A stretch of DNA of 64,000 bases from Lepidodermella squamata (GCA_047495785.1 JBLDXI010000026.1:62001-126000); one strand, 5' to 3'; positions 13,899-50,944 are shown, numbered from the stretch's first letter. Notes: generated by a model from the letters alone, not told the origin. Numbers and translations are program-made.

Positions 13899-14306
13899 AT
13901 GGCCCTAAGTGCATTAATTGCGGTGATTCTGTTCACCGCGGTAAGCAGCTAGGTCAAGGCAAACGAGGCGCTTCCGATTGCCAACAGAAGCGCACAGCCT
14001 CGTCCAGATCACCAACCGATAGATCGACGATTGCCACAGTTTCTTAGATCTGGAAACGAAGATCATCAACCGATGGATCGACGATTGCCACAGTTTCTTA
14101 GATCTGGAAACGAAGATCATCAACCGATGGATCGACGATTGCCACCGTTTCTTAGATCTGGAAACGAAGCTAAGCTATTACGATTCCAGGATTGTTTACT
14201 GTTCCGATGCAATGTGGGCAGAGTCGTTTCGTATCCGAAAGCATCATGCATCATCCGATGCTGGAAGCTCGCTAAGTTCATAGTAGACTATATATTTAGA
14301 TCATAG
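13899..14306 (+). pseudogene. 4-Cys secreted peptide precursor, subfamily I copy A; in-frame TAG in the signal peptide; pro-region has 3 x 54-bp tandem repeat
   Basis: MALSALIAVILFTAVSS*VKANEALPIA...(DHQP[IM]DRRLP[QP]FLRSGNE)x3 AKLLRFQDCLLFRCNVGRVVSYPKASCIIRCWK. TAG at 13950-13952 where paralogs have TAC/TTC. Confidence 0.85.
14007..14168 (+). repeat. 54-bp coding tandem repeat x3
   Basis: GATCA.CAACCGAT.GATCGACGATTGCCAC.GTTTCTTAGATCTGGAAACGAA at 14007, 14061, 14115. Confidence 0.95.
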
Positions 14307-15616
14307 ATCACATTCCAGGCATTATAGACATATTAGCAGTATAGATCTCGATGAATATTAATGCATCAAATGCTGTGATCTTTCAAACTATGTGATATGC
14401 CAAAGCTAGTCTCTCAATATTTTACCGTAATTTTTTATGATGAAGTGGCCCATTCGCTGGTAAAAGCCGTCGCTTTTGATGATCCCGAATAAATCACATG
14501 TCAAATGTAATTCATCTGAAAATTTTGAATGAAAACACCGGAATACAAAACAAGCATTATTCAATCGGAAAACGTGCTATACAGGGTTAGTCATTTCTTA
14601 TTTATGAGGTGTCGATCGGCCTACTTATCACTCGTTCGATTTATTGCTTTTACCTCGTCTCACCGCGATCAAGTGTGGAAAGCGCTCGAAGACCTAGGAG
14701 TTTCTTGCGATCTTCCCGATAACATTATATAGGGATTACATTGCCACTGTGCGAGTAAATGGCATCAGCGCGAAACCCTTCCGAGTGACCAAGGATATTT
14801 TCAGCTGTATTTAACGCAGTCTGCAAGCGATTAGGCCGAAACACACGTGTGTAGCATTTTCAAAAAATTCCAGAAACCAAACAGTGATAGCTGGAACTAA
14901 CTAGCTTCCCTATTCGCATACAAAATCGGAAAAAGCTGCATGGCTGCAATAAAAAAAATAAGAGTGCATCGAAAAAAAGTCGAAAGAATTGCGTTTTTTG
15001 CCATTTATTTTACTTCACAGTTGTTTTTTCGCCACGAAAATACAACATTGCAGAGCACAACATCTCTGGCCAGTTTTCGTTATGCTTACCATAAGCGGTA
15101 AAATAATTAGATATTCCATATTTTTTATAAGAAATTTCCAGCAAAAATGGGTTAAACATAACGAAAACAGCATAAAACAATGGCAGGCGGTGTTTCCACC
15201 TTAAGCTTTAACAACTTCTTTCACACTCGTCCTCGTCGTCATCATCACAACACACGGCGTAATTTGAACATAATAGATTTTTCCACGTGAAATATTCGTA
15301 ACTTTTTGCATGCTAGAGTAATCATCATTATCATCGTTTTTCTCATCGGGAAGCAGCGCGCACTTGCTTGGCAAGCTTGGCCACTGTCCCTCACGTAAAT
15401 AATAATTGCGAATAACGATAACAATAATAGAATTGAAACAATAATTGAAAGAACGTCGCGCAACACAAAGAAACTAAATTTTGATAAAGTATTTTCGTCG
15501 TCGTCGTAAATAAGCGATCAGCTCTCAGCTTTCAGCATAGGTTTGTATCACAACAATTTCAATAATGATAATAACGATTAATTGCGAAATGACTAAGGAA
15601 TTGCAAATCATCGCCT

Positions 15617-15919
15617 TCAGAAGTGCTTCTTCAGGCGAAGATTTTTCAGGCAGTCGTTGTAGCACTGCTTTTTCAGGTAGTTGGTTGGCTTCCAGAAACA
15701 CAGACCGGTGCAGCTGACGTACAGATCGTTGTAGACGCCCGACTGGCGGCGTTGGCGGCTGATGAGAGAGGCGACGAGGTCGCTCTCGACGGGCGTCAGT
15801 TTGAGGAAACCGGAAACCAGCTGGTTCGCAACTTGGTCATGAGGCAGGGCGGACATCACAGAAAATTGCAGAAGGCTGAGAACGACGGCGGCGCAGACGA
15901 ACTGATTCGATGAAAGCAT
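15617..15919 (-). CDS. Secreted 4-Cys peptide precursor (signal, pro-region, RQRR furin site, C-x3-C-x11-C-x3-C)
   Basis: Hydrophobic N-terminus; RQRR|QSGVYNDLYVSCTGLCFWKPTNYLKKQCYNDCLKNLRLKKHF; TATAAA about 150 nt upstream on the - strand. Confidence 0.85.
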   Translation of the reverse strand: MLSSNQFVCAAVVLSLLQFSVMSALPHDQVANQLVSGFLKLTPVESDLVASLISRQRRQSGVYNDLYVSCTGLCFWKPTNYLKKQCYNDCLKNLRLKKHF

Positions 15920-16775
15920 TTTTCGTTATTAAAGACTAAAACCGACTTATATTCACGGCAAAAATCAACTAGGTATCTCTTAACGCTCACTGGGTTGCGT
16001 GAATGCAGTGTAAGTTGCTGTCGGTAGCTGAAAATGTGTAGCCGGCAAGGTTTCTACGCCAGTATTTATACCGGCTCGGGACAGACACCGGTTCTGTTAG
16101 ATGCCTTGTATGTTAATTATTCTCTCAGTTTTCAACCACCCTGTGTGTAGGCATGTGCGCAGCGCGTATCATGTGCGCGGAAATACGACGTGTGCCCCTA
16201 TTAGACTTTGAACCCAACCGATACCAACAATGCGCCGTAATCAGAGTCATCAGCGCATGAGAAAAATTGCGCGCGCTCACGTCAGTATATATGTGAGCTG
16301 ACTAAAATTTCATTACTACTCCTCATATGACTTATTGGGCCGCGATACCCACACCTATATCATCATCAGCGCGCCGGTGTGTTCGCAGCAAGTGAACTGC
16401 TCCGCTAAAATGTGTGCTATAGCTCATTTATTCCGGCCTCAATTCGCTCCCACTACCCCCTGTAGAAATTTTACGAGTTAATAGCGTTTCTGTTAACATT
16501 TCCGGTGGTTTTGCGGTAAAAAATGTGGGAAATTTAGTCATTTTTTATGTCTCTATTACCGGCATTTTTTGCTCCTCAGATGCTCTCAACGTTTTTGTCG
16601 CAATCAAGTTTAGTTTGGATTTAGGACATGGTGCTATCTAGGACAAAACATCGAATAATTGAGCAACAATGTATCAGAATTTTTCAGCCAATATTCCCAA
16701 AAAATCCCGCCATTAATGTTGAGCGATTTTTTTGACCTCGAGAAAAGTGATTAATTAACTAATTTTATTGATAAC

Positions 16776-18345
16776 TCAGTTGAATATTGAAATCAGGTCA
16801 TCAATGTCATCAATGGGTGTTTCAATTTCATTTTTGGCTGCGTTAATCGCATCATTCCGAACGATAATTTCGCGGAAATAAGCGTCGTTATTTGAATAGG
16901 GCGGCCGTGATGCCAGCGCCTTCCATGCCGATATCCGTCTAGTTGCCGCTTCAGCCAACAGCGTCAGCATGCTTATCATCCGCTCAATCCTTGGCACCAT
17001 CGCATTTGGGTCGTTGTTGTAAATCTGGGCGAGGTAAGCCTTGAAATGCGTCTCGAGTTGTAGGTAAGCTTTAAGGACTGGGTCTTTGTGGCGAATTGGC
17101 GCGTCATTCCAGCCGGAGTAGAACAGGAACGCGAAGAGGAAACTCATTTCAACAGAAGATGGCTGCCATTCTCGAAATACGCCATTCAAAAAATTCGCCT
17201 CCGGGAGGGTGTACTGAAAAATAAACTGTTACGCAACGAAGATCATAATTTTGAAGCGGAAAATTTACCGCCATTTCGGGCGCAAATGGGACAAGTTTTT
17301 GAAAATGTTCCGGCAGGGTGTTCACAAGCACAATAGTATGCTCCGATCGAAAATAGTTCTCCGCGATTGATATTTTCGAGAAAGCAGTTTGAAATAATGT
17401 ACACCTATCCTCAAGAACTATGTCCTTGTAGCCTGAATAGAAATTTTGTGAGTTAAGGACAGAATGACCTGAAAAATTTACCTGGCAGGCAGCGGACATA
17501 TTGAGCCATAAGCTGGGCAGCCGTGTTGTATTGCTGTAAAATAGCTGGCCAGATTTCCTCCAGTGGTTTCGCTTGAAATTCAGGTTGTCTCGTGGGGAGC
17601 TATAAGGAAACATTTCATTTAAATCACAATTATTCGATTAGCTCATCAACATACTGTCTCGTATTGCAGCGTAATATCTTTTGCATTTTCAATTAAGGTG
17701 GCTATATTTTGATCATTAACCAAATTATAAAACAAGCTTTGATCAGGCGATGGTAATTTCGATTGCTGGCTGTACGGCTGCACTGATAGAGAGTCGCTGC
17801 TGACTTCGGTTGAACCTTCTGCGCTTCCATTTGAAGTTACAGGACAGGAGGAATCTGCCGCGTTACTTTGAGATTTAAATATATCCCGATATTTTACTGG
17901 CGATCTCATGCCGAGGGAGAAGCATTTCTGCAAGCGGCATAGTGGGCAGATGGCTCGCAAAACTGCCCCTGATTTAGACAATGGGTTCTTATCAGTGTTG
18001 TTGACTGTCTGAGCTCTCAGGCGCCACTTTTCGTCTGACAAACATTGGTTATCGCCCGAGCGACACGACAGCTTCCAGTAGTTTTCTCTATGGCGGAGGT
18101 AGAACCGCTGAATCATGTTAAAAAAAATTAGGAAAACAAATGTGGGAGGAATAATTATTATTAATTATTAATTACCCGACATGATTCACAGACGAAAGCT
18201 CTGTGACGGCTGATTTTCGACGTTAAAACAGCGCATACCTTATAAAAATTCCGAATAAAATTATTTTTGCTGTAAATTGGAGACAACAGAACCAAACCTG
18301 ACAATTGATGATTTCGATCTTGCCAGATTTAGGTTTTTTCGCCAT
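16776..18345 (-). CDS. Divergent nuclear hormone receptor (two C4 zinc fingers + LBD), 6 exons
   Basis: Spliced DBD MAKK...NCQ|VCAVLTSKISRHRAFVCESCR|RFYLR...CRSGDNQC...CPLCRLQKCFSLGM; LBD signature YVRCLP|GYKDIVLEDRCTLFQ; GT-AG introns restore the frame across ORFs 17646, 17149 and 16776. Confidence 0.9.
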
Positions 18346-19414: not shown

Positions 19415-22400
19415 ATGTTTTTTTCATCCACCCAATTTCAACGTGAGAGGAAGTTGGGGAAGGGCAGCTTTGGCGAGGTTTACACGGTTCGAAGCTTACT
19501 GCCGAATGACAATGGCACTTATGCAATCAAAGTTGCTGACTTATCCCGAGTTATCAGCCAATCGACTAGCCTCATCGAAAGGGAGAGAATGAAAAATTCT
19601 TTACTGCAAGAGGCTGAAGTCATGAAGAGCCTCAATCTTCCACATGTCATTCGAGTATACAGCTGTTTCCTAGGTAAATTCAACGTAATTAAAAAAAAAT
19701 GGAATTTCATAAACTAAAATTTATAGAGAGGGACCTTTTCTTCATGTCTATGGAGTTTTGCGACGCCGGGACCTTAAAACGAGCCATCCAGTTGCAACGA
19801 GGCGAGCTCTTTGACGAGCCACAGATTCGTGAATGGGTGTCACAGCTGCTTCCTACTGTCAATACCCTACATTCCCGCAACATTCTGCATCGTGATATCA
19901 AAAGCGAAAATATTTTCTTAACCGTCACACGTCAAGGGATAAGTCTGAAGCTTGGAGACTTCGGAATGACTCGACTCTTGAAAACTTCCCCTGGTAAAAG
20001 CGTGGCTTCAAATCCGCATATTCCCCCGGAAATAGTTGAAGGCGGCCCCTTTGACTTCAAGGCAGACGTATGGGCGTTGGGGGTAGTCATTTACGAGATT
20101 ATAACCCTGTTCCTACCGGTGAGTGATTAAATTTCCATAACCGCATTGATTTCAGCCTTAAATTGTTCTAGTTCGAAGGCCAGAACGCTCGACTGAGTAA
20201 AAAGCCTCTCAAAGCTATTCCTGAACAGTTTAGCGTGGAGCTACGAGAGCTTGTAGAGCAACGTCTGTTGAACAAAGACCCGCATCGGCGGCCAATGTTA
20301 GCGGAAGTTGTTGCGCAATGGGCTGAAGCTACGCCTGTAAAGAAACCCACGCCAGCTAACTTATCACCAAGGCGGCAATCGGTTGTTCCGTCGTCACCTG
20401 CTAGACTGAGCGACGAAGAAATGGTGGAAAAGGAACTGAGGCGACTGGCGAAGCGGCAGAGCCAATCTTCCCTACCGAAAAACGAAGTTATACCCCAACG
20501 GTCGAGCCCGTCAAATCAACGCCGTCAGCCGGTTGAACCTCAGCCGCAACATAGGGAAAGCGCATCGCAGTTCGAAAGAGCTGAGCCTCGAACACCTGCC
20601 CCATATTCGCCTTCGTTCTCGCCCAGGCCAGCGTCGCCGAAAAACGACGAAGAAATGGTCGAAAAACAGTTTGCTCGCCTTGCTCAACGACGCTCTTCCG
20701 GTCTACCCGGGTCGCCACTACTTGCGAAGAAAGGAGAGGCAAGCCTACCCCCGCACCAATCGCCCTTACTTCCTATCAATCAGCCTTTGACGCAGTCGTT
20801 GCCCTCTTCGCCTGTGAAACGGCAGCCTATCGACGGAAAGTTTTCATCTCGGCCTCCAGCTAGCAACCCGCCAAGTTTATCAATGGTTCCGGAAAATGAG
20901 TTCAGGCCCGGCTTCGGTATCGTGGAGCTTGACGAAAAGATGGCCGATACTTTACTAGCCGCCGCCTCTTCCGGAAACGCCCAAGCCCTGAGTCAGCTTC
21001 TACATCGAGTTCAAGTTGAGCAGTTGGTGAAACCCGAAATCTGGCGCAAAAAACCAGGCGGCGACAACCCGTTGCATCGGGCCGCTCGTCAGGACCGTCT
21101 GGATGCCACGAAGTTGTTGATGAACAAGGCGAAACAGCTTGCCTATCTTGAAAACAGTAGCAAGCTGGCCCCGATTCACTGCGCAGTCCTAAGCGACGCC
21201 GCTAGGATTTGCAAATGCTTGTTAGATGCCGATAAAACGCTATTGGAGCTGAAGGAAAGCAAGTTCGGCCGAACCCCACTTCATCTTGCCGCAAGCATCA
21301 ACAGCCTCCAGGCCGCTAAAGTTCTAGTTCGAGAGGGAGCTGATTTGTTCGCAAGGAGCAATGTTTACGATTTCGGTTCCACGCCCGCTCATTTAGCTGC
21401 AAGTTTCGGCAAAATTCCTGTTCTCGAGTACCTGCTGTCATGCAATGAAGAGCTGATTCTGGCTGAAAACGCGCAAGGTTGCTGCCCGTTTCACAGCGCT
21501 GCTATACATGGAAGTGTAACGGGAGTTGAATACTTTATCAACCGGCCAAATTTCGACATCGAGCTAACCGATTCGGAATACGGCCGGACAGCTCTTCATG
21601 CTGCAGCTGATGCTGGGAAACTTGACGTTGTGAAGCTGCTAGTCGAGAACGGGGCTAATATGTTCGCCCAGAGTGCTCAGAACGATAACTCGTCATTACC
21701 GATCCATTTAGCAGCTAGATCAGGCCACACGAGCATCCTGGAATACTTCTGCGATACGAATCCAGAATTGATAACGGCTACGGATGGGGACGGCCGGCAA
21801 GCTATCCATAGGGCAGTTATGAACGACCGTGAAGCTGTCTTAGATTTCCTGCTATCACGGGGGGTTAGCATAGAAGCAACTACTGACTCTTTAGGGCGAA
21901 CCTGTCTCCACGAAGCCGCGTGTTTTGGGCAGCTGGAAATGGCTCGAAAGTTGATAGAAAGAGGGGCGGATTTGTTTGCGAAATCCGGTGAAGCAGACGG
22001 TTTCATGCTTGCTAGCCACATCGCGGTTAGTTTTGGTAAAGTCCCTGTCCTCGAGCTTTTGCTCAAAACTGAACCTGAGCTTATTGACACGAGTGACGGA
22101 GACGGCAATAAGCCGATTCATACAGCTGTAATACGGGGTAATACCGTTGCGATTGAGTTTCTGGTAAAAACCTACCCGCGAACTCTTGAACAGAAGGACG
22201 AGATTTATGGCAGAACACCCCTTCACAAAGCTGTGGTTAGTAGGAAACTCGCGATGGTGAAGTTCATGCTACATCTTGGCGCTGATCCTATGGCTCGCAG
22301 TAATCTAGAAGATCACGGCTCTACTGCCATTCACCTTGCAGCTTGTTTCGGCGACATCCAGATTTTAGAGGTTTTGGTAGCGAAGAACCCGAATTTGATC

Positions 22401-23453
22401 GAGGTTGCCGATGATCACGGCAGCTATCCGATTCATTGCGCTGCGTTGAACAATAGCACGGCTGCTGTGGACTTTTTCTTGTTAATCGGCGTTAAAATCG
22501 AGCAGAGGAGTAAGATTTACGGGCGAACCCCCCTGCATCAAGCTGCCGCGAATGGTTGCCTCGAAGTTGCGGAAAGATTGGCTGAAAACGGGGCTGACTT
22601 CTTCGCACGAAGTAACAGCGATGATGGAGAATCCTTACCCATTCACCTAGCCGCTGCGTTTGGCCAAGTGTCAGTCCTTAAATTCTTCCTAGACGTTAAA
22701 CCCGAACTTGCGAACGAAAAAGACGGCTACGGCAACTTGCCGATTCACCGAGCTGTTGGCAACTGTCAGCGGGAAGCAGTCATCTTTCAGATCGAGCGAT
22801 TTCCGAGAAGTCTCGAGGCACGTAATGACAAATTCGGCCGAACTCCGTTACATCACGCCGCGGCTAGTGGCGAGTTGGAAATGGTTCAGTTGCTAGTCGA
22901 GAGGGGTGCTGACATCTATGCAAGGTCTAACAGCTCTGACCATGAGTCCCTACCGATTCACCTTGCAGTTTGTTTCGGCCACGTGGCTGTCGTTGAGTAC
23001 CTGATAGACCACGATCCAGCTCTTTTCGAAACGACGGATGGACAGGGTTGTCATCCCTTCCACACTGCCGCGATAAATAATAACCTTACATCAGTGGAGT
23101 TTTTCTTAAGCCGGAAACTGAGTACTGAACAACGAGATGCAGCGTTCGGCCGGACGGTCCTTCATCACGCTGCGATGAAGGGTTACGTCGAAATCGTCGA
23201 TGCTTTAGCTGAAAATGGGGCGAATATCGAGGCGAGGTGCAACGCGGATGATAACGAATCAACGCCGCTTCACTTTGCAGCTTGGCAGGGTCATCTCGAA
23301 GTCGTTAAATGCTTGATTGAGAAGCATGGCGCTGATGATTCAGCACAAGATTCAAGCGGCAGGACTGCGTTGGACTATGCAAGGTTATGCGAATCAAACG
23401 GTGACGGCGAGCTTGTCGTAGATTACCTGTCTAATTTGCCTCAAAAGTCTTGA
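19415..23453 (+). CDS. NEK-like Ser/Thr kinase fused to a Pro/Ser linker and ~22 ankyrin repeats (exons 19415-19673, 19727-20118, 20172-23453; ~1310 aa)
   Basis: GKGSFG, YAIK, MEFCDAG, HRDIKSENIFL, KLGDFG, DVWALG; repeated GRTPLH.AA..G...V+.L+E.GA; in-frame GT-AG introns. Confidence 0.9.
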
Positions 23454-23540
23454 ATCAATACTTCATTCATTATTTGCTTGCAAATATTTAAGTTATATAA
23501 AAAAGGAAGTGGGGGAAGGTTATTTTTCGATGGAATTTGT

Positions 23541-24083
23541 CTATCCATCTAGTTTCAGTAAGCCTAGATGACGATTGAGGCAATGGACCAAGCATTGATT
23601 AGGCCAAACAGTAGTGGCTCCTCTCGGCGTACATTTCTTGCATCGGACCTCCATTTGCCTGTCGACAGGCAGCACCTTACTCGCCGCGCCGCCCTTGATC
23701 TGACCGATTATCGTGATGACATAATGGTCATCTGATTGTGCAGGATCGATCTTGACAATTATAATTTCAGAGCATGATGCTGATGAAACCAGTGGTGAAG
23801 TTAGTTGTTGGCCTGCTGTTGTGGCGGGTTGCAAATAAGGGTTATTCATCGTCGTATATCCACGGATAGAATCAACGATAGGCAAATTTCGCAGTCCTTG
23901 GACGAATGCCGCATCAAGTTTGACAGTCACAGTCTGGTCACTTTTCCTTACTAGATCCCCGCTAGGACCAACTCGTCTCAGGGCCAATGGAGGCGGTTCT
24001 GATGGTGCATTCACGACTTGATCAGCGAAAACTAAAGAATAAGTTAAATTGAGAAGAGCTGGCAGATAAAAAAGAAAATCCAT
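23541..24083 (-). CDS. Secreted protein with a long pro-like region and C-terminal 4-Cys motif (C-x2-C-x12-C-x3-C)
   Basis: MDFLFYLPALLNLTYSLVFA signal-like start; ...RCKKCTPRGATTVWPNQCLVHCLNRHLG; single exon. Confidence 0.65.
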   Translation of the reverse strand: MDFLFYLPALLNLTYSLVFADQVVNAPSEPPPLALRRVGPSGDLVRKSDQTVTVKLDAAFVQGLRNLPIVDSIRGYTTMNNPYLQPATTAGQQLTSPLVSSASCSEIIIVKIDPAQSDDHYVITIIGQIKGGAASKVLPVDRQMEVRCKKCTPRGATTVWPNQCLVHCLNRHLGLLKLDG

Positions 24084-26291: not shown

Positions 26292-27478
26292 TTTGGGTGA
26301 AAATTTGGCTCGCGGGCTGTGTCCATTAAATAATGAACTCAAAAGCGATACAGAACAAATAATACAGCATCTGTATGCCGTGGGAGAGCACGACTGGTAA
26401 ACACCGGTTTCCAATGGAATTTTCTCTCAGATAAAAACCGATTTTTTTATTTGAACTGATATTAATGACTTCTTAATGACGCGTGTGATAGAAAATTGAT
26501 AAATAGGTCATGCAGCTATATCGCATGAACCGCAGTCAAAAGTGCCGTTGTCGGACTACGCCTAGGCGCGTGCGAAAATGTCGGCACGTGATAATATCAC
26601 CTAGTACGCCGTAGTCGCCGTATATACAGTGCAGCCCAGAAGTTAGGAAGATTAGGCAAGATTAGGAATTCCCCTAGCTGACCTAGTTTCAGGTCCACGA
26701 TTGTGTCCGCGATTCAGGTCCATGAATAAGCGAGCTTCAATTTGAGAATTCATTAGAAGCGTCGCAGCGCAGAGACATACCTTTAATATAGACGTAAATC
26801 TGGGGAGGCAACAGCGCTGCTTCCCCGCACAGATATGCGCCCGTTCATCGAGGCAAACGATCAGGATTGCCCGAAGACAACTGATCTGAAGCACATCAAG
26901 GAGAAAAACAAGTTGATTTTTTAGCAGGGATGTAAACTTAATCGAAGGAAGCAACAAAGCGACTTCTCAAATAAGGTCGCCTCGCTAAGAACACGGCATC
27001 GGCTTTCCAAATCTGAATTCTTCGTCCTTGCGCCGCACGCTCGGCTCGTCCCCAGGCCAGAGCAGGTCATTTTGTAAGACAATAAAATTAACCATCCCCG
27101 CCATGCCTTTCATCTTTTGATGATATGTATGTTTTTCTCATCAAGCTGTTGTGATGAAGTGCACATTTTCCAGTTTTTATTTGCTGGAATTTTCCGCTCG
27201 CCTTTTATTTTTCTATTATTTTCTCGCCGATCTGGTAGGATGTTGTTTTGTCTTTTTTGAACCAGTCGCCCTACCGAGCTCAGGGGTAAGGGCTAGCTGG
27301 AGCTTCTCACGTGATTCACGTGATATGGCGCATCGGGCATATTTACTCAATGAATGGCAGAGTGCTTTTCGAGCTGCCGAATCGAGCTCAAGTCATTATT
27401 CCTATTTCATACTTCGAAAGAAAGTCGATCATTTAATCCATTTAATCGATTTTATCCATTTAACATTTGCAGTTTAAT

Positions 27479-28659: not shown

Positions 28660-28974
28660 TTAAGTATTGGCGGACTTCCAGCATTCGATTAAGCATGATT
28701 TTATCGATTTCAAAACGACTCTGCCAAAATTGCATTGAAACAGTAAACAATTCGGAAATCGCAATTGCTTCGATTCGTTTCCAGATCTAAGAGGCTGTGG
28801 CTCCGCGGCATTAACCGTCGGTTGAGCTGGACTAGGCTGTGTGATTGTGCTTACAATAGGAAGCGTCTCGTCTAGACTAGGCTGTGAGCTGACAATCGGG
28901 AGCGCCTCGTTTGACGTGAAGTAGCTGCTTAACACGGTGAAAAGAATTGCTGCAAAAGATGCACTGAGAGCCAT
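28660..28974 (-). CDS. 4-Cys secreted peptide precursor, subfamily I copy B
   Basis: MALSASFAAILFTVLSSYFTSNEALPIVSSQPS...LRSGNESKQLRFPNCLLFQCNFGRVVLKSIKSCLIECWKSANT. Confidence 0.85.
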   Translation of the reverse strand: MALSASFAAILFTVLSSYFTSNEALPIVSSQPSLDETLPIVSTITQPSPAQPTVNAAEPQPLRSGNESKQLRFPNCLLFQCNFGRVVLKSIKSCLIECWKSANT

Positions 28975-29535
28975 AACAGGATTCTTTATGTTTTAGTGCA
29001 AACGATAATATATTCCACATCAACGAATTTAGATATGTGACACCGCACTTGCTGAATGCTGGTATATATGGTACCATTTTATCTCTCAGATCGATTTGAG
29101 GGAAATGTAAAATGATTCAAATTAATCTTTGCAGGTGACTAGTTTTCATCTTGACCAAATGAGAGGGTGTGGCTAGTTCACATGCTTTCATTCGCTATTC
29201 CAATATATTTATGCCATCAATGACGCAAAACCAGTAATGAATATCTAATGTGATTCTTTGATCTATGATAGATCTAATCTATGAATATCTTATCTATGAA
29301 TATTTAACAATAGAGCAAGTGAGGCTCTATGGTGAGCCGCAAAATTACTCATACGAAGCATGATTCATGACCCTCCAGATTGTCCGGGATAAGGTTTACA
29401 GTTTATTGAGAACCTGCTCTTTTCGAATAGAACCTGAAACAAGTCAATAGTATGGATCAACCATCAATCGATGAAAATGGTCACATTCAGCAGCAATACA
29501 TTCAATTTCGAATAGTTGCCTTATTGGGTTGGTTT
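28975..29535 (-). repeat. Duplicated upstream block of the subfamily I genes (also about 13600-13898 on +, 35197-35728, 44865-45340)
   Basis: Shared segments GACACCGCACTT, GACTAGTTTTCATCTT.ACC, TTTATTGAGAACCTGCTCTTT, GTATGGATCAACCAT.AATCGATGAAAATGGT, GCAATACATTCAATTTC (the last three only in B, C, D). Confidence 0.9.
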
Positions 29536-34908: not shown

Positions 34909-35196
34909 CTACGGTGAACTATTTAGCTTGGCGAGCTTCCAGCATTGTTTCATGCATGGTGCGCTCGCAAACGGACCGACACTGCCCATATTGCATAGGA
35001 ACTGTAAGCAATCCTTAATTAGCTTCGCTTTGTTTCCAGATCTAAGAAACTGTGAAAATCGCCAATCCATTGGTTGATCAGGACTAGGCTGTGAGCTGAC
35101 AATCGGAAGCGCCTCGTTTGACGTGACGTAGCTGCTTAACACTGTGAACAGAATTGCTGCAACGGAAGCGCTTAGGGCCATAACAGGAGTCTTCAT
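34909..35196 (-). CDS. 4-Cys secreted peptide precursor, subfamily I copy C
   Basis: MKTPVMALSASVAAILFTVLSSYVTSNEALPIVSSQPSPDQPMDWRFSQFLRSGNKAKLIKDCLQFLCNMGSVGPFASAPCMKQCWK. Confidence 0.85.
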   Translation of the reverse strand: MKTPVMALSASVAAILFTVLSSYVTSNEALPIVSSQPSPDQPMDWRFSQFLRSGNKAKLIKDCLQFLCNMGSVGPFASAPCMKQCWKLAKLNSSP

Positions 35197-36927
35197 GTTT
35201 TTAGTTTAAACGATAATATCCTCCACTTGAGCGAATTTAGCTATCTGACACCGCACTTGCTGAATGCTCATTTTTATATCTATTATCTATATCTATATCT
35301 ATATATCTATATCTATTATTTCTTTTATATCTCATTTCGATTTCAGGGAAATAAAAGATGAGTCAATTTCATCTTTGAAATGACTAGTTTTCATCTTCAC
35401 CAATAATGAGACTGGGAAATGAGAGCGCGGTAAATGCAGTAACTTTCAATAGCTATTTTGATGTTATTACGCCAACAATAGTAACGAATATCTAATTAAA
35501 TTCTCATAGAGCAGGTGAAAGCAAGCTCAATGGCGAGTCGCAAAAGTACTCATACAACGCAATGATTCACCGTAAAGTTATTTTCTGTTTTTTTAAGGGA
35601 TGAGGTTTACAATTTATTGAGAACCTGCTCTTTGCAAATAATAGAACCTCAAACAAGTCAACAGTATGGATCAACCATTAATCGATGAAAATGGTTAAAT
35701 TTAGTAGCAATACATTCAATTTCCAAGATTGATCATGCTAAATAAAGAGCCCCCTAATTACTTCGCGCGTTTCCCCTAAATAGGGTGGCTCAAGTACCTT
35801 GTTTAAGGGGAAGCTTCACTGTACCCTGAGCCCCTTAGTTAACGTCTAATTAGAGTGATTTGTTTTCTGGTGCACCCCTATCGGTATGTAACATTCTTCT
35901 GAAAGAATAAAACTGATGCACGTTATTCGTACTGAGCAGCGGATAAGTTGAACATCTTCAGTCTTGATACCATAAAAATAAATGAATCCATAGTGAAAAC
36001 GAGGTTTTTGTATCGTAACAACGGTTGGGTTGCCCAACTCATATCTGATACCACGTGAATGAGCAGCTCGCATTCTATTGGTATTAAGCAGAGATGAGAA
36101 TGGGTCGGGTCATTTGGGTCTTTTTTGGGAAGCCAGTCCGGAGAACCCGTACTGGGTGTAGTGGGTTTTCCCGCTACAAGCAATCTCATCTGAGCCCTAT
36201 ACGACAGGCACACAGACATCTGGCACCGGTATTGAGGGCTGGGGTAGCACACCACGCATTTCTAGGTAGCGTGGCAGGATACAATGGGAGACAGTAAGTT
36301 TTCCCAAACCGGTAGTCTAACCGGTAGATGCACTGGTATTAGGCAACTGATGGCTCGGAGTATCCCACAAAGTTTGCTGGGGCAGCCACCAAGTCAAGCG
36401 GTACCACCACGTCAAGGTTCCAGTGCTTCGGCCCGTTTTTTTATTTGGGAAAATTATTCCCAAGGGCTAGGGCCCAGTGGACCCATCTAGAGACCAGTGG
36501 TCCCGATGCCCTTAAAGCTGCTTTCTTTCAAGTTGAAAAAAAGCAGACTGAGCTCCCAAGGAGCCTGCCAGGTACTTTTATAGGCAGTGGTGTGCGCCCA
36601 GTCCGCGCACTCCCTATTGCTGGACGTTCCCATGGTGATGGCGTTCATCTTGCGGGCTAGTGGAGCCCGAAAGGTAGCCTGCAGACAGTGCCGTGGGCCG
36701 TATGGCCGCTAAGGCCAGCTTAGTGCCTCGGAGTGACAAATGGTCGCTGGGCAAGTGACCTGCCATCATGGGACCCGTGTCCTAGAGGAGCGGTAGTGCC
36801 TCCATAGGGTGCGGAGTAGTGTCGTCGAAATAAAAAGTGGGTGCCACTCATCTAAGAGTACTATGTCGCTAACAATGTTTTATTAACAAACGCCAGAGCA
36901 CCCAGTTGATGCAAGCACAGTTAGTGT

Positions 36928-37400: not shown

Positions 37401-37581
37401 CTGTCAACGTGGCAAGAGGCAGTAACGAACGATATTACTTTTATTCAACTCCACAAAATGTTTCATAAAAATAGAGATGAGCCAATAGTAGTTCAATAGT
37501 CTGTCGTGCCGTACACGTCCAGCCCAAACGGGTTGGCCACTACTGGCGTCCAGCAGTCCCACCTGAAAGTAAAACAAGTGG

Positions 37582-40500: not shown

Positions 40501-40731
40501 AAGTTTGTAGGAGCAGTGCTTTGCAGAAACCAAGAATTTCCCGCATAGTATCTGCGCTTCTTGGTCGGACTTAGCCGGAGCGGGGGTGAGCTCGTCGCCT
40601 GGCGGGGTTTCGTGGAGCCTCTTCATATCTGCCAGCAAACTGGTGAGGGCATCGTTTTTGCTCAGTTTAGCTGGGGGCTGATCCCTAGGGTGTTGTTGAC
40701 CCATTCGTTTTTTCTGGTGGAAATTGCTCAT
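37582..40731 (-). CDS. Penelope-like reverse transcriptase, 1049 aa, with N-terminal extension and C2H2-like finger, no GIY-YIG
   Basis: KGLKFVP, SDKSN, YKTHK, VRPI, SADINDMYNQVP (motif A), YKQIRGLAMGGNISP (B), RFLDDIF (C), YLDV (E), KPTD...DSNHP...GQILRFLRIC...RGY thumb typical of PLEs. Confidence 0.93.
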   Translation of the reverse strand: MSNFHQKKRMGQQHPRDQPPAKLSKNDALTSLLADMKRLHETPPGDELTPAPAKSDQEAQILCGKFLVSAKHCSYKLAFRAMGRRSERDDATMKEVAKSFSLNDAACTEVFRPRIAAAAHRAFTELQQLHDDADVYKAMTEFEDFRNALKLVARPDDVVLRAYTWLHDKKGAAKWPMSGIHFAAGHWPTSARPDLPGLSPEEIFGLDLGLPIGQFRAAKPTAESEILQLFVEHVDRVIHDALLMKAADAAALHDTMESSLELSRDLSPGQNPRTAQTAQDYPAPGTGSTAPAPPHPPPGQQQQVTLDHPGQDLTVPGIGPAAPAQPIQRPRAQPDKTAATPPAPLRTFAFTPLKNVTAPPPTGNGKGRSTLTWTDLVQYHTHSGNTSVVNSLSYLLSTPNRYWAWEVVPYMAPPDGRNTIVCSRLKTELLCGCGPTPFANTYSALTRHLSDRHPGHLWELEFSFDNIWAAFYPGELIPSFYQERDAAAGVNFNLSAKNQRLLRQFGIIDLTDSVRPSLLRLLGKGLKFVPRVRAEQLRRYHQLLGVAATNGVHVPQRLRRIAFSRISALGRETPPPRLPRGVVLTRSDKSNILIVDSAARYAAIGEDFLSDRNMWQPVSDDGYDSFISDLQDLCSELYRTNSWFRLHHEQVVPAITNPRLKCMYFNYKTHKPLNAHGWPKVRPITDGLKTYTSGLDRVLSLLIGGTRFRQGEHHLRHLIANRTPIWNNLNTVAKDTIQFIARLRSVHLRDPDRETFLMSADINDMYNQVPLDEAVVAVRWYLDEFHRLPGEAILPVSQLTELVLRHNTVSFNGKFYKQIRGLAMGGNISPPVAICWLYYKERWLSLGTGALFTTRFLDDIFSISHMREGLQHYLDSYESSHPNIRITADIAVDSQHYLDVAVRRSGDRFLTALHVKPTDNLALLHGDSNHPVHVFTGIMRGQILRFLRICQTHQAFMTACLQLGLRLRQRGYSWQEFVVALRQVCRERSALAWPFTRPRRPYRPLRDTCVVTFSRTLLPILRHIGQRIPLTYRLDRTISQRYRRSNFRL

Positions 40732-41348: not shown

Positions 41349-41824
41349 TCACGATGATGCTTCGCCATGTTCCGGAAGTTGGCGGCGGGTCAGCTTATCT
41401 TCATAGCCGTAAATCACCTCACACCAGCACTCCGGCCAAGGAACTGTGTAGGGCGAGTGGGAAGTCTTCTTTTTCCACGGCTGACCTACAATCAGCTTCC
41501 AGAAATTGCGGAAAATGCACCCTGCCTTCCTGTGGCGCTGCATGAAATGGGTGTACATGCCATATATGGTGCGGGTGGTGGCGCCACAACTACGGAACAG
41601 GCAGAGGAGTTCTTCGGGATGTGTCCGAAAGAACGGAACCTTGCGCTTTTCTTCCCACATGCGTAACCAGAATGCGTGTTGGCCTACGGCACGATCCCCC
41701 TCGGAGGCAGGATCCACCGGGCGCTTCAAGTTGGCAAACTGGCTGGAGCAGCCAGAGTCCGGCAGCTCCCACGCGCGGTTGGTGCATGTGTTTCCTCGGC
41801 GACTCAGAGGTAGCTGAATTCTGC
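41349..41824 (-). CDS. ATG-less C2H2 3' exon of PLE unit 2
   Basis: TTCACTTTCCTCTTGCCTTATCACAG|GC AGA ATT gives GRIQLPLSRRGNTCTNRAWELPDSG...CLFRSC-x12-HFMQRH...VPWPECWCEVIYGYE, aligning with unit 1. Confidence 0.8.
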
Positions 41825-41970
41825 CTGTGATAAGGCAAGAGGAAAGTGAAAAACACCGCTAGAGTAAGCATGGCATAAATGTTTATTCAACAAAATGCGT
41901 GACTCATATGTATGAAACAGTCATATAGAGGCAGTCCTTGCCTGGCATTGTTGTCCACATCGGCCGGTGA

Positions 41971-43094
41971 TCAGCGCGGCGCCACACCTGTAAATACAGA
42001 AGTGGGGGTTAGTGAGAACTTTGAACGCCTATAGCGCTGCCCGATGGAGCTCTCAAGCGTGTAGGCCAGTGGTACCTTACTCTTCAAAAATCCCAAGAGG
42101 GGGTTCAACGCCTTGCTGTAAGGCAAGGTGTGCGACGATGCATATGCCCTGCTAGGGCGGCGTGCTTTGGCGAAGGGCCACTTGAGTCCCTTGCGCTCAG
42201 CACTTACCCGGTGTAGCTGGGTAACAAAGCTGTGCCAACTGTACCCCCGTTTACTAAGGTGAGTGCCAAGTTGGACGCATGCTGACATAAAGGCGCTGTG
42301 TGTCTGACAGATGCGGAGAAATCGCAAGATCTGCCCGCGCATAATTCCCGTGAAAATATGGCGAGGGTGATTCGAGCTACCATGGAGGAGAGCTAAGTTG
42401 TCTGTCGGCTTGACGTACAGCGATGTCAGCAGTTTATCGCCAGAACGCTGAACGTTTATGTCGAGGAAGTGCTAACTATCCACCGCAATATCCGCGGTTA
42501 TCTTTATGTTAGGGTGACTGCCCTCGTAGGCATCAACAAAGTGCTCCAGTCCCTCCCGCATGTGGGAGATGGAGAACATGTCGTCAAGGAAACGCGTCGT
42601 GTATAGCGCCCCCGAGCCTACTGAAAGCCAACGTTCCTTATAGAACAGCCAGCAAATGGCCACTGGGGGCGAGATGTTTCCGCCCATGGCAAGGCCGCGC
42701 GTCTGCCGGTAGAACTTATCATTGAAGGAAACAGTGTTGTGCCGCAAGACCAGCTCCGTCAGGTCGCACACCGGCGCAATAGCATCATCGGGCAACCTAC
42801 GGAATTCTTCTAGATACCACCGTACTGCAGTGACAGCCTCAGAGAGGGGCACTTGGTTGTACATGTCATTGACATCAGCGGACATCATGTATGTTACACG
42901 TTCTGCGTCCCGAAGCGTGATAGCCCGTAGTCGCCTCACGACTTGAAGAGTATCCTTGGCGGTGGTATGCAAATTCCCCCAAATGGGTGTGTGATCCTGG
43001 ATTAACTTGCGGAGGTGTCCCTCACCAGGACGAAAATGCGTCCCACCAATGAGTAAGCTCAATATCCGGTCGAGACGCGATGTGTACGTCTTAA
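41971..43094 (-). pseudogene. 5'-truncated RT of PLE unit 2 with nonsense codon at 42472-42474
   Basis: SADVNDMYNQVP, GLAMGGNISP, RFLDDMF; DS*HFLDI vs DSQHYLDV in unit 1. Confidence 0.9.
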
Positions 43095-43657
43095 CAGTTT
43101 TTCTGTTTTTATTTCTTTCACGTCCTTCGGTTAGCGATATTAAGAACTGAAACACTGATTGAGTTAGAAGTTGAAAATTATCACAGAAGTTCAGCGCGAG
43201 CAAGCGTAAAGCGACGAAGTTTGATGTTCAATGTGGACAGGTCGCCAACGTCAATCGCGTACCGTCTTGCCAAAGTTCAACTGCAAAAATAGCCCAAACT
43301 TTAGGTATTTCTTAAACACCCAGTATCCCAGTCGAACGCGGGTCATATGAAAGTTATATAATTTTCAGCGATTCCATCATATTACTAGTCACATGTGATT
43401 GCAATATAGGAAATGTCGTTCTTTGTAGCTAACTTTTGAAGAAAATGTCACATCGATGGTTATATAACCGGCATATGATCTTCATATGACTTTGACTCAG
43501 AAGCTCATTAGCATATGCAAATATTTATAACCCAATTAACAATAATTAAAATGATAATTACTCAGCCCCCTGAGGTCTCAGGCGCCGGTAACCATTGCAG
43601 ATCCCCTCCAAACATTGTTTGAAAGAATCGAAAGACAAATGGGTCGAAGTTGACTTG

Positions 43658-44570: not shown

Positions 44571-44864
44571 TTATTCAGATTTGGCGAGCTTCCATTGGAC
44601 GAAGCATTGGACGATGCATGATGGTATGGGATACAGGCCGACTCTGCTAATATTGCATCGAAACCGTAAACAATCCTCGAATCGCGATAGCTTCGCTTTG
44701 CTTCCAGGTCTAAGAAGTTGTGGCAATCGCCGATCGATCGGTTGATCTGGACTAGGCTGTGAGCTGACAATCGGAAGCGCCTCGTTAGACGTGACGAAGC
44801 TGATTAACACTGTGAACAGAATTGCTGCAACGGAAGCGCTTAGGGCCATAACAGGAGTCTTCAT
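44571..44864 (-). CDS. 4-Cys secreted peptide precursor, subfamily I copy D
   Basis: MKTPVMALSASVAAILFTVLISFVTSNEALPIVSSQPSPDQPIDRRLPQLLRPGSKAKLSRFEDCLRFRCNISRVGLYPIPSCIVQCFVQWK. Confidence 0.85.
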   Translation of the reverse strand: MKTPVMALSASVAAILFTVLISFVTSNEALPIVSSQPSPDQPIDRRLPQLLRPGSKAKLSRFEDCLRFRCNISRVGLYPIPSCIVQCFVQWKLAKSE

Positions 44865-45298
44865 GTTTTTAGTTCAAACGATAATTTCCTCCACTTCAGC
44901 AAATTTAGTTATGTGACACCGCACTTTTTATATCTCTTTTATATCTCAACTCGATTTCAGGGGAAATAGAAGATGATTCAATTTAATCATTCCATTGACT
45001 AGTTAATCTTCACCAAATGAGAGCGCGGTAACTTTCATTAGCTATTTTGATGTTGTTACGTCAACTATAGTGACGAATATCAATTAAATTCTAATAGAGC
45101 AGGCGAAGCTCTATGGCGAGTCGCAAAATTACTCATACAACGCAATGATTCACGATAAAGTTATTTTCCGTTTTTTTAAGGGATGAGGTTTACAATTTAT
45201 TGAGAACCTGCTCTTTGCAAATAATAGAACCTCAAACAAGTCAACAGTATGGATCAACCATTAATCGATGAAAATGGTTAAATTTAGCAGCAATACAT

Positions 45299-45780
45299 TC
45301 AATTTCCAAGAGTTGCCGTATTGTTTGTCCGGGTTGGTTTCGGAGGCCTCAATTTGTCGAAATCGATATTGCCGCCATCCATTCCCGATTCTGTCATAGG
45401 ACTCCGGCAGGCGTAGCCACAACCGGTGAAGCAGCAAATTTGAGAAGTCGATTCACAGTTGAAGCACAGATCTCCGCAGGTTCGCATAGACCCATAACGG
45501 ACGGGTGGACATTTTAGGACAGGCTTTACAGCTGCCGGTCGATTCGTCCCGCAATTCACCTTCTTGCCATCTAAGAAAAACTCAGCGTCGCAGTAACCCT
45601 GGCACGTCTGAGAGACGCATTTCGCATTAGGGTGGGCTGAATGATGAAAGCTGATTTTTACAAAAATTAATAGCAATAATGGACTTTGATTAACCTGAGC
45701 AGTTGGAAACTCGACACGGGTCAACAAAACATTGAACAGGTTTGGGACAAGGAATTGCGTTACCTCCGCAAATGTCTGCA
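45299..45780 (-). CDS. Cys-rich protein with WAP-like domain (exons 45780-45695, 45636-45299; 5' exon unresolved)
   Basis: CPKPVQCFVDPCRVSNCS|AHPNAKCVSQTCQGYCDAEFFLDGKKVNC module, then KPVLKCPP...CGDLCFNC...CCFTGCGYACRSP (WAP-like). Confidence 0.7.
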
Positions 45781-46936
45781 CTTGAAATAACCGTGAAAAA
45801 CACAATAATTAAGAACCTTATCAAGGTCATATTTTTTTATTGAAAAATGCACCTTACAACAAGCTAATCAGTTAGAACAGTCACGCTTGAGTTGCCAAGC
45901 GGCTCATCTGCTGTCCCTGAACAATGGGTAATGAGTAAATATTGCTCAAACGATGATTAAACGGACGGTTGATGAAGCGTTAAAGACGGTCCTGATTTAG
46001 AGCCAATGTCCAAAAATCATTGTCATGGTTTATTAGCTGACATGCGGCTCAACGTCTCCTGCAATAGGGTTGATTTGAAGGTTGAATAACTGGGGTGGAG
46101 CTAAGCGCGTCGAACAAGCGTTCGATGCACTTGAATGGCTGGATTATTTGATTATAGTTCAATCGTTCAAGCGCTTCGAACGTTCCACGAGTTCGTTTTT
46201 GTCAACGCTAATATTTGTCAGAGTTCGACTGTATAGGAAGAAACTTGGGCGCCATACACCTACTGTAACTAGTACTGAACTGACGAAATATGAACTATTT
46301 TTTAATATTTTTAGCACACGTCGAATTTTGTTTTCGCTTGTCAAGTCGTCATGCTTTTGTCTTGCTGGGACATACTCACCTAGTGGAAAATGAGCTATCA
46401 TACGAGATTATCTGGCGTTTCATAATCGCTTGTCAGAATGTGTCCTCATTTTATTAGGTTAATCTAATTTACTCAATTTTCCAATTTTCCACTGCAATAA
46501 TCTAGGGCAAATTTCATTTTAGTGCAAGTTCGCTCGGGTTATCCGCGATGCCTGACTGGTTCCAACTATGCACCCTGTCTCAGGATTAGCATCGCACTAC
46601 AAGAACGAAGAACTGAAAGAATGGAATCATAAGGTGTAACGGTAGTCACATGGAGGTCTCGTTAAGAGGAAACTGAGATCTAACCATGCGGAAAATTATC
46701 GCGACTAACTAAGCGTGAAATTCGAAAATTAACCTCCAGAATTTGAGCAAGATAAATACTTGTCTAAATACTCTACGCTATTCGCTATTTATCAAGGTGA
46801 CTCCAGCTTGGTGAATGGCGATTTCTCTTTACACAACCTTGAGAAACTTCTCATTCGGGGCATCAAACTAATCATTGAAAGTTGTGTTATAGGCCAGCAC
46901 TAACATCGGCCCGGATTATGCCGAGTCAAATAGATT

Positions 46937-47846: not shown

Positions 47847-48098
47847 TCAGCTCATGTACTGCGAGAAGCACCGGTCGATGCAGAGCTCGCGCTTGCTCGC
47901 TGTCGTGTGTTCAGTATTGCCGCTGCAGTCCGTTACGCAGTAGGTCAGCCGGCCGTAGTCGCCGAAAGCTAGGCCTGTTGCACGTTTCGCCCGAAGAAGT
48001 TCGACGCCGTTGCGATGACTTGCCGGAGCAGGCGTGCTTGAATGAACGAAGATCATGAGGGCAATCGCGATTGAGCTGTAGTAGTACCAGGAAGGCAT
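47847..48098 (-). CDS. Secreted 4-Cys peptide precursor (RAKR site; C-x3-C-x14-C-x3-C)
   Basis: MPSWYYYSSIAIALMIFVHSS...LLRAKR|ATGLAFGDYGRLTYCVTDCSGNTEHTTASKRELCIDRCFSQYMS; TATA-like site near 48160. Confidence 0.85.
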   Translation of the reverse strand: MPSWYYYSSIAIALMIFVHSSTPAPASHRNGVELLRAKRATGLAFGDYGRLTYCVTDCSGNTEHTTASKRELCIDRCFSQYMS

Positions 48099-49654: not shown

Positions 49655-49945
49655 TCATCCTAGCAATAAACTGCCGCTTGTCCTGCTGCACTCGTCTTCG
49701 AAACAGGTCATCAGCGCCTGGGTGCCTTCGTCGTGATTGCTCCGGCAAGCTAGCAAGCACATATTCCATTGAAAGAACTCGTTTAACGAAAAGCGCTTCA
49801 CTCGCGCTACCGCCGAAGAACTAGAAGCACCGGCGTGTCGGAAGCTTTGTCTGTCTGAGATTTTGATTGATCGGCTTTCTGAAGAACTGACAAGCAAGGC
49901 CGATAATAGAATCGCAAGACCAAGGATAGCGTAGAAAGACGACAT
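49655..49945 (-). CDS. Secreted 4-Cys peptide precursor (RVKR site; C-x3-C-x13-C-x4-C)
   Basis: MSSFYAILGLAILLSALLVSSSES...ARVKR|FSLNEFFQWNMCLLACRSNHDEGTQALMTCFEDECSRTSGSLLLG. Confidence 0.85.
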   Translation of the reverse strand: MSSFYAILGLAILLSALLVSSSESRSIKISDRQSFRHAGASSSSAVARVKRFSLNEFFQWNMCLLACRSNHDEGTQALMTCFEDECSRTSGSLLLG

Positions 49946-50713
49946 TGTATATGATTGATTTTAAATACTAGAAAATAAAGTATTTTGGTCGGATATGTAA
50001 CTGAAATTATATCCTGATAAGGCTAAATTAAATTAAAAAGCGTCACGAAAAATTAGTTTGCCAGAGGCAAAGGTCGCATTCCTTTATTCATTTTAGTCTA
50101 ATAATATGACTCAAGATACGGCGGCGGCGGTGTGAACCCCGCGAAACATGCTGTATATCGATGACTAATACCATTATACGTTTTTTATTTATTAAAAGAT
50201 GAATAAACGGCACTTATTTGACCCTACCGGCAGCGCATGCTAGCTCACGTGAAGAAGGATGCGTGCTTTTGTTCTTTTTACGTTACCTGATGCAATTATT
50301 TCACCCACCACGTAAGTAATCGTAAACAAAGGCGGATATTTTACTCCGCATTCAATGTCAGCGAATGAGTGAATGGCCTTTTGTTTACACGAAGATGCAT
50401 GACAAAAGAATTCGATGAATTGAAGCTCTGTATTCTGGTAAAAAACTAAATAATCGTGCGGTTAATTATTATCGTGACCAAATATATGCTTTAAATCCGT
50501 CAAAAAAATGACCAAATTTTTTTTTCTTGCCTGACGACTAAAACTGGTTATAAATCAAGTTTGATCTATTTTCGGTCACGAGATTGGCCCACTCGTCTGA
50601 AAAAAACGGCAAAGACAATAATAATTTGTTGACTATTTATTTTAAAATACTAAAGATCGTATTCGTCATAAGATCAGGTAAAACAGATGTTAAACGTTAA
50701 AATTATGTCTTTA

Positions 50714-50944
50714 TCACAAAAATATGAAACACGCGAGGCAAGTTCTCCTTCCAGGAAAAGGCAGGTTTATGTTGCAACTTCTCAAGCAATCCTCAAAAAT
50801 TTTTAAAAAGGCCGGGCGATTGTCTGATTTTGGTCGATCCGTGACTGATTCCGATTGCGCGAAAGCGACAGTTGTAGAGATCCATAATATACAGACTATA
50901 GCCAGTATCGAAAGCGATGATGGAGATAGATATTGGTGTTTCAT
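50714..50944 (-). CDS. Secreted 4-Cys peptide precursor (C-x3-C-x11-C-x2-C)
   Basis: MKHQYLSPSSLSILAIVCILWISTTVAFA|QSES...FEDCLRSCNINLPFPGRRTCLACFIFL; TATATATA at about 51003-51010. Confidence 0.8.
   Translation of the reverse strand: MKHQYLSPSSLSILAIVCILWISTTVAFAQSESVTDRPKSDNRPAFLKIFEDCLRSCNINLPFPGRRTCLACFIFL

Follow-up and report, generated by a model that had tools for sequence, protein, structure and literature searches.

A cluster of intron-less genes with a C-terminal four-cysteine frame

The stretch analysed here, hereafter the window, comprises 64,000 nucleotides of Lepidodermella squamata DNA (GCA_047495785.1 JBLDXI010000026.1:62001-126000), and all positions are counted from its first letter. 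Over 37 kb it carries a cluster of nine short, intron-less open reading frames (ORFs), all of which encode the cysteine frame C-x(2-4)-C-x(11-14)-C-x(2-4)-C. Each ORF is named after the low end of its coordinates, which corresponds to the stop codon in minus-strand genes and to the ATG in 13899. Five of the ORFs, together with a gene remnant, are paralogues: 13899, 28660, 34909 and 44571, which we refer to as group A, and 50714, a more distant relative. Only four (15617, 23541, 47847 and 49655) are sequence singletons.

A six-frame scan of the window with the wider pattern C-x(2-4)-C-x(9-16)-C-x(2-4)-C returned 17 matches. Nine of these are the cluster ORFs, and the remaining eight fall within zinc-finger and ephrin-receptor-like repeats past 55 kb. 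The scan thus recovered every ORF listed in a first-pass annotation of the window, each at the position given there and with a single C-terminal frame; it also bore out the strand bias claimed at that stage, since eight of the nine ORFs lie on the minus strand and only 13899 on the plus strand. In all nine the frame ends 4-14 residues ahead of the stop codon. When the window was simulated 200 times as a first-order Markov sequence, ORF-terminal frames preceded by at least 50 codons occurred 0.1 times on average and never more than once, compared with the nine observed.

The frame is accompanied by other marks of a secreted precursor. A hydrophobic N-terminus was present in seven of the eight intact frame-bearing ORFs, compared with 20 of the 144 ATG-initiated ORFs of at least 50 amino acids in the window, an overlap for which a hypergeometric estimate based on these counts gives about 3e-6. 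The earlier claim that every member has a signal peptide agrees with the signal-like N-termini of these seven; the N-terminus of 23541 is only weakly signal-like and the signal part of 13899 is broken. Furin-type RX[K/R]R sites were found in exactly the three ORFs for which they had been announced, 15617 (RQRR), 47847 (RAKR) and 49655 (RVKR), at 11-14 residues from the first cysteine (Cys1); from residue frequencies, we estimate the chance of a site so placed at about 0.4% per protein. These data show that the signal-like N-terminus, the furin motif and the Cys frame co-occur non-randomly. They support the view that the cluster genes, which look like genuine unannotated single-exon genes, encode precursors of peptides that are probably secreted, judging from the hydrophobic N-termini.

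The three furin-site genes all lie on the minus strand. The 15617 gene (15617..15919) encodes 100 amino acids, with a signal-like N-terminus, RQRR 11 residues before Cys1 and a basic C-terminal domain of 42 amino acids with the frame C-x3-C-x11-C-x3-C. The 47847 gene (47847..48098; 83 amino acids from the first ATG) likewise has a signal-like N-terminus, with RAKR 14 residues before Cys1 and a slightly acidic 44-amino-acid domain of the pattern C-x3-C-x14-C-x3-C. The product of 49655 (49655..49945; 96 amino acids) starts with a strong signal-like segment and carries RVKR 11 residues before Cys1; its domain (45 amino acids, C-x3-C-x13-C-x4-C) is acidic and the last residue of the protein is Gly. 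The fourth singleton, 23541 (23541..24083, minus strand), is a doubtful member: it encodes 180 amino acids with a weak signal-like N-terminus and C-x2-C-x12-C-x3-C near the stop, and no furin site was found in it. It could be a chance ORF, its length being, by our estimate, not unexpected by chance.

We therefore considered whether group A might be the only genuine family, with some or all of the singletons, 23541 in particular, being non-coding chance ORFs. ORFs of about 100 codons are common at the base composition of the window (an estimated tens per window), and no homologues of the furin-site singletons were found in sequence searches of the PDB or in exact look-ups. However, with only 0.1 ORF-terminal frames expected per window, with frame, hydrophobic N-terminus and a correctly placed RX[K/R]R combined in each of 15617, 47847 and 49655, and with the 15617 domain confidently predicted as a hairpin without any alignment (see below), we judge this explanation quite improbable.

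A young paralogous subgroup with signs of birth-and-death evolution

By shuffling-based Smith-Waterman comparison, the four group A members are related to each other with z = 28-56. Three of them are intact minus-strand genes, 28660 (28660..28974; 104 amino acids), 34909 (34909..35196; 95 amino acids) and 44571 (44571..44864; 97 amino acids), and all four copies have the frame C-x4-C-x12-C-x3-C. The fourth, 13899 (13899..14306, plus strand), is inverted relative to the others. Because of one in-frame stop in its signal-peptide part it has no intact precursor and is a pseudogene, so that the first-pass statement that all members encode precursors does not extend to this copy. Its pro-region contains a 54-bp tandem repeat in three units (14006-14169, plus strand; 97% match) that triplicates an 18-residue piece, with an RR dibasic pair in each unit. 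The remnant reported previously was confirmed, at 27761-27928 on the minus strand; it resembles group A in the signal and pro parts only, with several in-frame stops and no Cys domain. The distant relative, 50714 (50714..50944, minus strand; 76 amino acids from the first ATG), has a strong signal-like N-terminus and the frame C-x3-C-x11-C-x2-C, and scores z = 8.7 against 44571.

Similarity among the group A copies reaches beyond the coding sequence. The 5' flank of 13899 (13700..13898, plus strand), with TATAAAA at -109, is homologous to those of the other copies. The 5' flank of 44571 (44865..45021, minus strand) is conserved, with TATAAAA at -79 and -68, and the same motif stands at -133 and -82 of 34909; it is thus conserved 68-133 bp ahead of the ATG in three copies. 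The flanks of 28660 (28975..29512, minus strand) and 34909 (35197..35726, minus strand) are homologous over about 540 bp, which makes the duplication unit larger than the gene. The unit shared by group A extends from a point at least about 190 bp ahead of the ATG to a little beyond the stop, that of 28660 and 34909 from about 540 bp upstream. The 3' flanks could not be aligned between copies.

Conservation is uneven along this unit. DNA identity amounts to 80-89% in the 5' flank, 79-97% in the signal part, 67-87% in the pro-region and 67-81% in the Cys domain, where a few positions beside Cys1, Cys2 and Cys4 are conserved in addition to the cysteines. The three intact copies have kept one reading frame despite several indels, and every indel within group A preserves the frame. 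The dN/dS values, which with about 30 codons per region are indicative only, range from 0.06 to 0.7 in the signal part and from 0.46 to 1.5 in the Cys domain. Conservation of promoter and signal part alongside divergence of the mature part, together with a pseudogene and a remnant, is the birth-and-death pattern usual for genes of defence, venom and reproductive peptides. The sequence comparisons thus support a birth-and-death mode of evolution for group A, with tandem duplication, inversion, decay and divergence. Recent duplication, inversion, a pseudogene and a remnant also make group A appear to be still expanding; the first-pass annotation had said so of the whole cluster, and the evidence bears it out for this subgroup.

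A tblastn search for further group A copies in the window returned the remnant only. A match at 4534-4614 (minus strand) to the Cys domain of 44571 had E = 0.05 and contained stops, and was treated as chance; it is either that or a very old remnant outside the cluster. We also rejected the idea that group A consists of transposon-borne ORFs: what the copies share is a gene unit with its promoter, at least about 1.1 kb long, and among the repeats listed no inverted repeat was found at the ends of any single unit.

Searches for relatives

No sequence relatives of the cluster were found. A Pfam scan of eight of the nine ORFs (all except 13899) gave a single, sub-threshold match, of 47847 to zf-Tim10_DDP (E = 0.008; 16.1 bits, compared with a gathering cut-off of 22.3). 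Sequence searches of the PDB with the group A profile and with the 15617, 47847 and 49655 precursors returned nothing meaningful. No match to 44571 was found in a word-indexed search of 5.8 billion proteins, and the group A alignment had no match at E <= 0.001 in a profile search of 1.84 billion representative proteins. In metagenome contigs, a scan with a single-protein query produced 349 pattern matches, none of which was confirmed. Exact-sequence look-ups of four intact cluster peptides found none of them on record. The cluster accordingly matched no described family by sequence in Pfam, the PDB or the protein profile search, and the earlier proposal of a lineage-specific set agrees with the blank searches of Pfam, the PDB, the 1.84 billion representatives and the metagenome contigs. 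The lack of relatives in any protein collection would fit a lineage-specific cluster.

Predicted fold and comparison with known scaffolds

The C-terminal domains are about 36-49 residues long. Pro and Gly account for 17% of residues in the C2-C3 loops, compared with 2.6% in the Cys-bearing flanking arms (all nine ORFs), and in every member the mid-point of C1 and C4 coincides with that of C2 and C3. This symmetry of the frame suggests nested C1-C4 and C2-C3 disulfides. AlphaFold2 was run on two of the nine members, on 44571 with a five-sequence alignment of which it was the first row, and on 15617 as a single sequence. In the 44571 model, a signal helix spans residues 10-28 and a disordered pro-region follows; two further helices (55-68 and 81-96; block pLDDT about 78-81) carry or abut the four cysteines. 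For the C-terminal 44 residues of 15617, that is the mature domain and two residues of the furin site, helices were predicted at 4-17 and 24-41, with a mean pLDDT of 79.9 and 20 residues at 90 or above. In both members folded, the Cys domain is therefore predicted to be a helix-loop-helix, as the first-pass annotation had anticipated in assigning the frame to the CS-alpha/alpha type. The strict C-x3-C...C-x3-C spacing that went with this assignment is found only in 15617 and 47847; the spacings are x4/x3 in group A, x3/x4 in 49655, x3/x2 in 50714 and x2/x3 in 23541.

Foldseek searches of the PDB with the two models returned disulfide-stapled helical hairpins as the best small matches, none of them significant: VBP-8, luffin P1, the Jug r 2 leader (TMq 0.64, rmsd 2.3 Å), nigellin-1.1, BWI-2c, Tk-hefu and the Ara h 1, Ana o 1 and Pis v 3 leaders. 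Tim9/10 and Tim8/13 were also among the matches of the 15617 model (TMq 0.65-0.74).

The latter matches, together with the weak zf-Tim10_DDP match of 47847, raised the question of whether the cluster encodes small Tim-type chaperones of the mitochondrial intermembrane space. Small Tims (Tim8/9/10/13) also place C-x3-C...C-x3-C on a helical hairpin with nested disulfides, a pairing that the frame suggests here. They lack signal-like segments, pro-regions and furin sites, whereas the cluster ORFs have signal-like N-termini, pro-regions and, in three cases, furin sites. In addition, the Pfam score of 47847 falls short of the gathering threshold and no other scanned member matched, the cluster motif lies at the extreme C-terminus, whereas small Tims have it in the centre of a protein of about 80-100 amino acids without a cleavable N-terminal targeting peptide, and both spacings equal 3 in two members only. 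Given the missed threshold and the precursor features we rejected this twin-Cx3C reading, which we consider almost certainly wrong.

The disulfide-stapled helical hairpin itself is a known scaffold, found in the scorpion kappa-KTx toxins, conotoxin vil14a, the nemertean toxin B-IV and acrorhagin I (PMC11722136); that of the kappa-KTx toxins is classed as the CS-alpha/alpha venom fold (PMC11722136, PMC7262511). In plants, alpha-hairpinin modules are either embedded in the N-terminal part of vicilins or strung together in cassettes of 5-12, and introns are absent from some alpha-hairpinin genes (PMC7191063).

Plant alpha-hairpinins, the best small Foldseek matches of both models (all E > 1), resemble the cluster products, as predicted, in being secreted peptides of about 30-50 residues with two antiparallel helices and paired CxxxC-type motifs; they have two nested disulfides, a pairing that the frame suggests for the cluster. 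They have roles in defence and include VBP-8, luffin P1, the Jug r 2 leader, nigellin-1.1, BWI-2c and EcAMP1. In contrast to them, the cluster lies in an animal genome, has a single C-terminal module behind a pro-region, with a furin site in three members, and mostly deviates from the strict x3/x3 spacing of alpha-hairpinins. Neither Pfam nor the PDB, which holds several alpha-hairpinin structures, revealed any sequence similarity.

The scorpion kappa-KTx toxins (kappa-hefutoxins, OmTx, HelaTx1 and LaIT5) are, like the cluster products as predicted, animal secreted two-disulfide helix-loop-helix peptides, and the hefutoxin-patterned Tk-hefu structures were among the matches of the 15617 model. 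They measure about 22-30 residues, compared with 36-49 for the cluster domains, and PDB searches found no similarity of the cluster to any solved chain. Characteristic of kappa-KTx are also expression in the venom gland and activity on potassium channels through a functional Tyr/Lys dyad. Conotoxin vil14a (framework XIV), nemertean neurotoxin B-IV and sea-anemone acrorhagin I are independent animal toxins on the same scaffold (PMC11722136). B-IV and acrorhagin I differ from the four-cysteine cluster products in having four disulfides. None of the three was matched in the PDB sequence searches or appeared among the Foldseek matches listed, and for framework XIV no cluster match was found in the PDB (where vil14a is 6EFE; PMC11722136) or in the profile search of 1.84 billion proteins. 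As membership in known families fails on sequence, and in the case of the alpha-hairpinins also because precursor type and kingdom differ, we class the cluster as one or several new sequence families on a scaffold already known.

Relationships among the nine genes

The first-pass annotation had described most members as sharing little sequence and all of them as one old family. The first description suits the four singletons and understates the relatedness of the other five ORFs and the remnant, which are demonstrable paralogues. The second found no support in our comparisons. Smith-Waterman z was below 3 for all pairs of singletons and for every singleton against group A, and in hhalign the group A profile reached a probability of at most about 1% against 15617, 47847 and 49655. 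MAFFT did not bring the Cys columns of the nine ORFs into register, for which reason no all-member profile was used, and no upstream 7- or 8-mers common to the independent lineages were found. By these measures, neither the furin-site genes nor 23541 could be linked by similarity to the subgroup or to one another. As none of these methods gives a link, the nine ORFs may, but need not, share one ancestor.

These results would be expected if group A and 50714 formed one young family and the three furin-site genes had reached the two-helix, four-Cys solution independently, or were too old to trace, and lay nearby by chance or through shared regulation. The differences in spacing, charge and processing point the same way, and the scaffold has arisen in plants, scorpions, cone snails, nemerteans and sea anemones (PMC11722136). 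On the other hand, at least four sequence-unrelated genes with one precursor plan (signal, pro-region, C-terminal frame) lie within 37 kb, and with eight of nine ORFs on one strand an ancient tandem duplication is the easier explanation; moreover, short, fast-evolving peptides quickly lose detectable similarity. We regard separate origins as a strong contender whose chances fall a little short of even.

The bolder alternative is that all nine ORFs go back to a single ancestral gene, as members of a so far undescribed animal superfamily whose secreted effectors are of the CS-alpha/alpha (alpha-hairpinin-like) type. Such a superfamily would have long diversified in place, with a young expanding branch and older branches that have diverged past sequence recognition in charge, processing and, presumably, targets. 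We consider this improbable, at roughly half the likelihood we give to separate origins. If true, the plant alpha-hairpinins would have an animal counterpart that has gone unnoticed because its genes are short and lack introns.

Neighbouring genes

The window is animal nuclear DNA, with exons of a metazoan nuclear receptor (16776-18116, minus strand). Several genes are interspersed with the cluster members. A gene with a protein kinase domain and ankyrin repeats lies at 19415-23453 (plus strand), and at 24818-26414 (minus strand) there is a gene whose product, a secreted protein, has first a LamG/ConA-like and then a trypsin-like protease domain; a word-indexed protein search found no relatives of the latter. 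Two long plus-strand ORFs of 525 and 358 amino acids (29881-31458 and 32106-33182), neither of which matched Pfam, may be a single gene or a transposase-derived gene. A probable two-exon Cys-rich gene occupies 45299-45830 (minus strand). Its first exon (about 45696-45830) encodes a signal peptide and the beginning of a Cys-rich domain, and is followed by a short intron and a Cys-rich ORF. The Cys pattern of this second exon looks WAP-like by eye; neither Pfam nor PDB sequences matched it.

Between about 36.9 and 43.2 kb lies a GC-rich block (52-56% GC, compared with about 40% around it) with two adjacent reverse-transcriptase retroelement copies, both on the minus strand (36928-40731 and, as outer bounds, 41367-43203). 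The first has an uninterrupted ORF of 1049 amino acids that matches RVT_1 weakly, and behind it a separate ORF of 159 amino acids. The second, 60-70% identical to the first, is 5'-truncated and retains the last third of the reverse-transcriptase ORF, with one in-frame stop within the aligned part, and the small ORF.

Beyond the cluster, an intron-less GNAT acetyltransferase ORF of 198 amino acids (51319-51915, minus strand), absent from the gene collection by exact sequence, stands directly downstream of a Cu/Zn superoxide dismutase gene on the same strand (about 52.4-53.0 kb). The nearest relatives of the dismutase exon are environmental metatranscriptome contigs (54-71% identity). Two paralogous IBR/RBR-type zinc-finger genes in tandem (54018-55621 and 57199-58448, plus strand) enclose an exon with ephrin-receptor-like Cys repeats (56131-56727, minus strand). 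An 88-amino-acid ORF at 60178-60444 (plus strand) resembles a multi-copy neuropeptide precursor, with a strong signal peptide followed by three similar acidic, Gly-rich repeats separated by RLRR-type dibasic sites; it had no Pfam match. Rfam revealed no RNA genes in the window.

Proposed processing and function

The features described above suggest the following scheme. The hydrophobic N-terminus would act as a signal peptide that takes the precursor into the secretory pathway. A variable pro-region would follow, and in three genes the RX[K/R]R motif at its end would be cut by a furin-type convertase. The C-terminal domain of about 36-49 residues would then be released, with two Cys pairs on predicted antiparallel helices joined by a Pro/Gly-rich loop, and the hairpin would be stapled by the nested C1-C4 and C2-C3 disulfides that the symmetry of the frame implies. 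Group A has kept its promoter-bearing 5' flank, signal part and Cys scaffold while the rest of the mature peptide changes fast; the three furin-site genes share the architecture, perhaps with an independent origin.

Extracellular host-defence (antimicrobial) or toxin-like effectors fit these genes better than conserved hormones. This reading is favoured by the turnover of the genes, by the basic charge of group A (net charge +3.4 to +5.7) and 15617 (+4.8), and by the other putative secreted-protein genes among the cluster members, namely the LamG-trypsin gene and the Cys-rich two-exon gene at 45299-45830.

The principal alternative, which applies in particular to the acidic furin-site products of 47847 and 49655, is a signalling role: the peptides would be neuropeptides, hormones or pheromones (water-borne or mating) cut by prohormone convertases, and their stapled hairpin would bind a receptor. 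The fixed distance of RX[K/R]R from Cys1 in three genes is consistent with this, as are the terminal Gly of the 49655 product, C-terminal Gly being the usual amide donor, the two acidic mature domains, which are unlike antimicrobials, and the occurrence of an unrelated neuropeptide-like multi-copy precursor (60178-60444) in the same window. However, hormones are usually conserved and low-copy, whereas here the mature part changes fast between paralogues, one copy of the subgroup is a pseudogene and another is reduced to a remnant, and no relatives were found in any other organism. Nor are furin-type sites specific to signalling peptides, as they are present in many toxin and antimicrobial precursors. 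We hold the signalling explanation to be rather unlikely, with about one chance in its favour for every three against.

Taken together, we lean, with slightly better than even confidence, towards the following reading: a cluster of small intron-less genes, restricted to one lineage and evolving by birth and death, whose secreted products are helical hairpins stapled by disulfides, most likely serve in defence or as toxins, and form a new family on a known scaffold. Several points weigh against it. The cluster is known here from its genes, and fold prediction covers two of nine members, one of them without an alignment. Every Foldseek E-value exceeded 1, as expected for queries of about 40 residues. 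The Cx4C spacing in the first helix of group A is not ideal for placing both cysteines on one helical face, and group A has no conserved cleavage site, so that the mature N-terminus is undefined. Its few-codon dN/dS values are also compatible with relaxed constraint. The products of 47847 (net charge -1.2) and 49655 (-4.2) are acidic, which is untypical of membrane-active antimicrobial peptides. Finally, the blank protein searches partly reflect the apparent absence of gene calls from this genome, and perhaps from its relatives, in the collections, and so weigh less than their size suggests: the four cluster peptides looked up and the GNAT ORF are absent by exact sequence, and the LamG-trypsin ORF likewise found no similar protein.

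Significance

The cluster illustrates how genes for short secreted peptides escape annotation, since none of the four intact peptides looked up was on record and a similarity search found no relatives of 44571. If the peptides are expressed, they would constitute a new sequence family on the disulfide-stapled helical hairpin, with an unusual gene organisation in which single-module, intron-less precursors, some putatively processed by furin, form a birth-and-death array. They would add an animal example of a scaffold that plant defence peptides and venoms have repeatedly arrived at, and their divergent sequences on one frame would form a natural series in which to study the diversification of such scaffolds.

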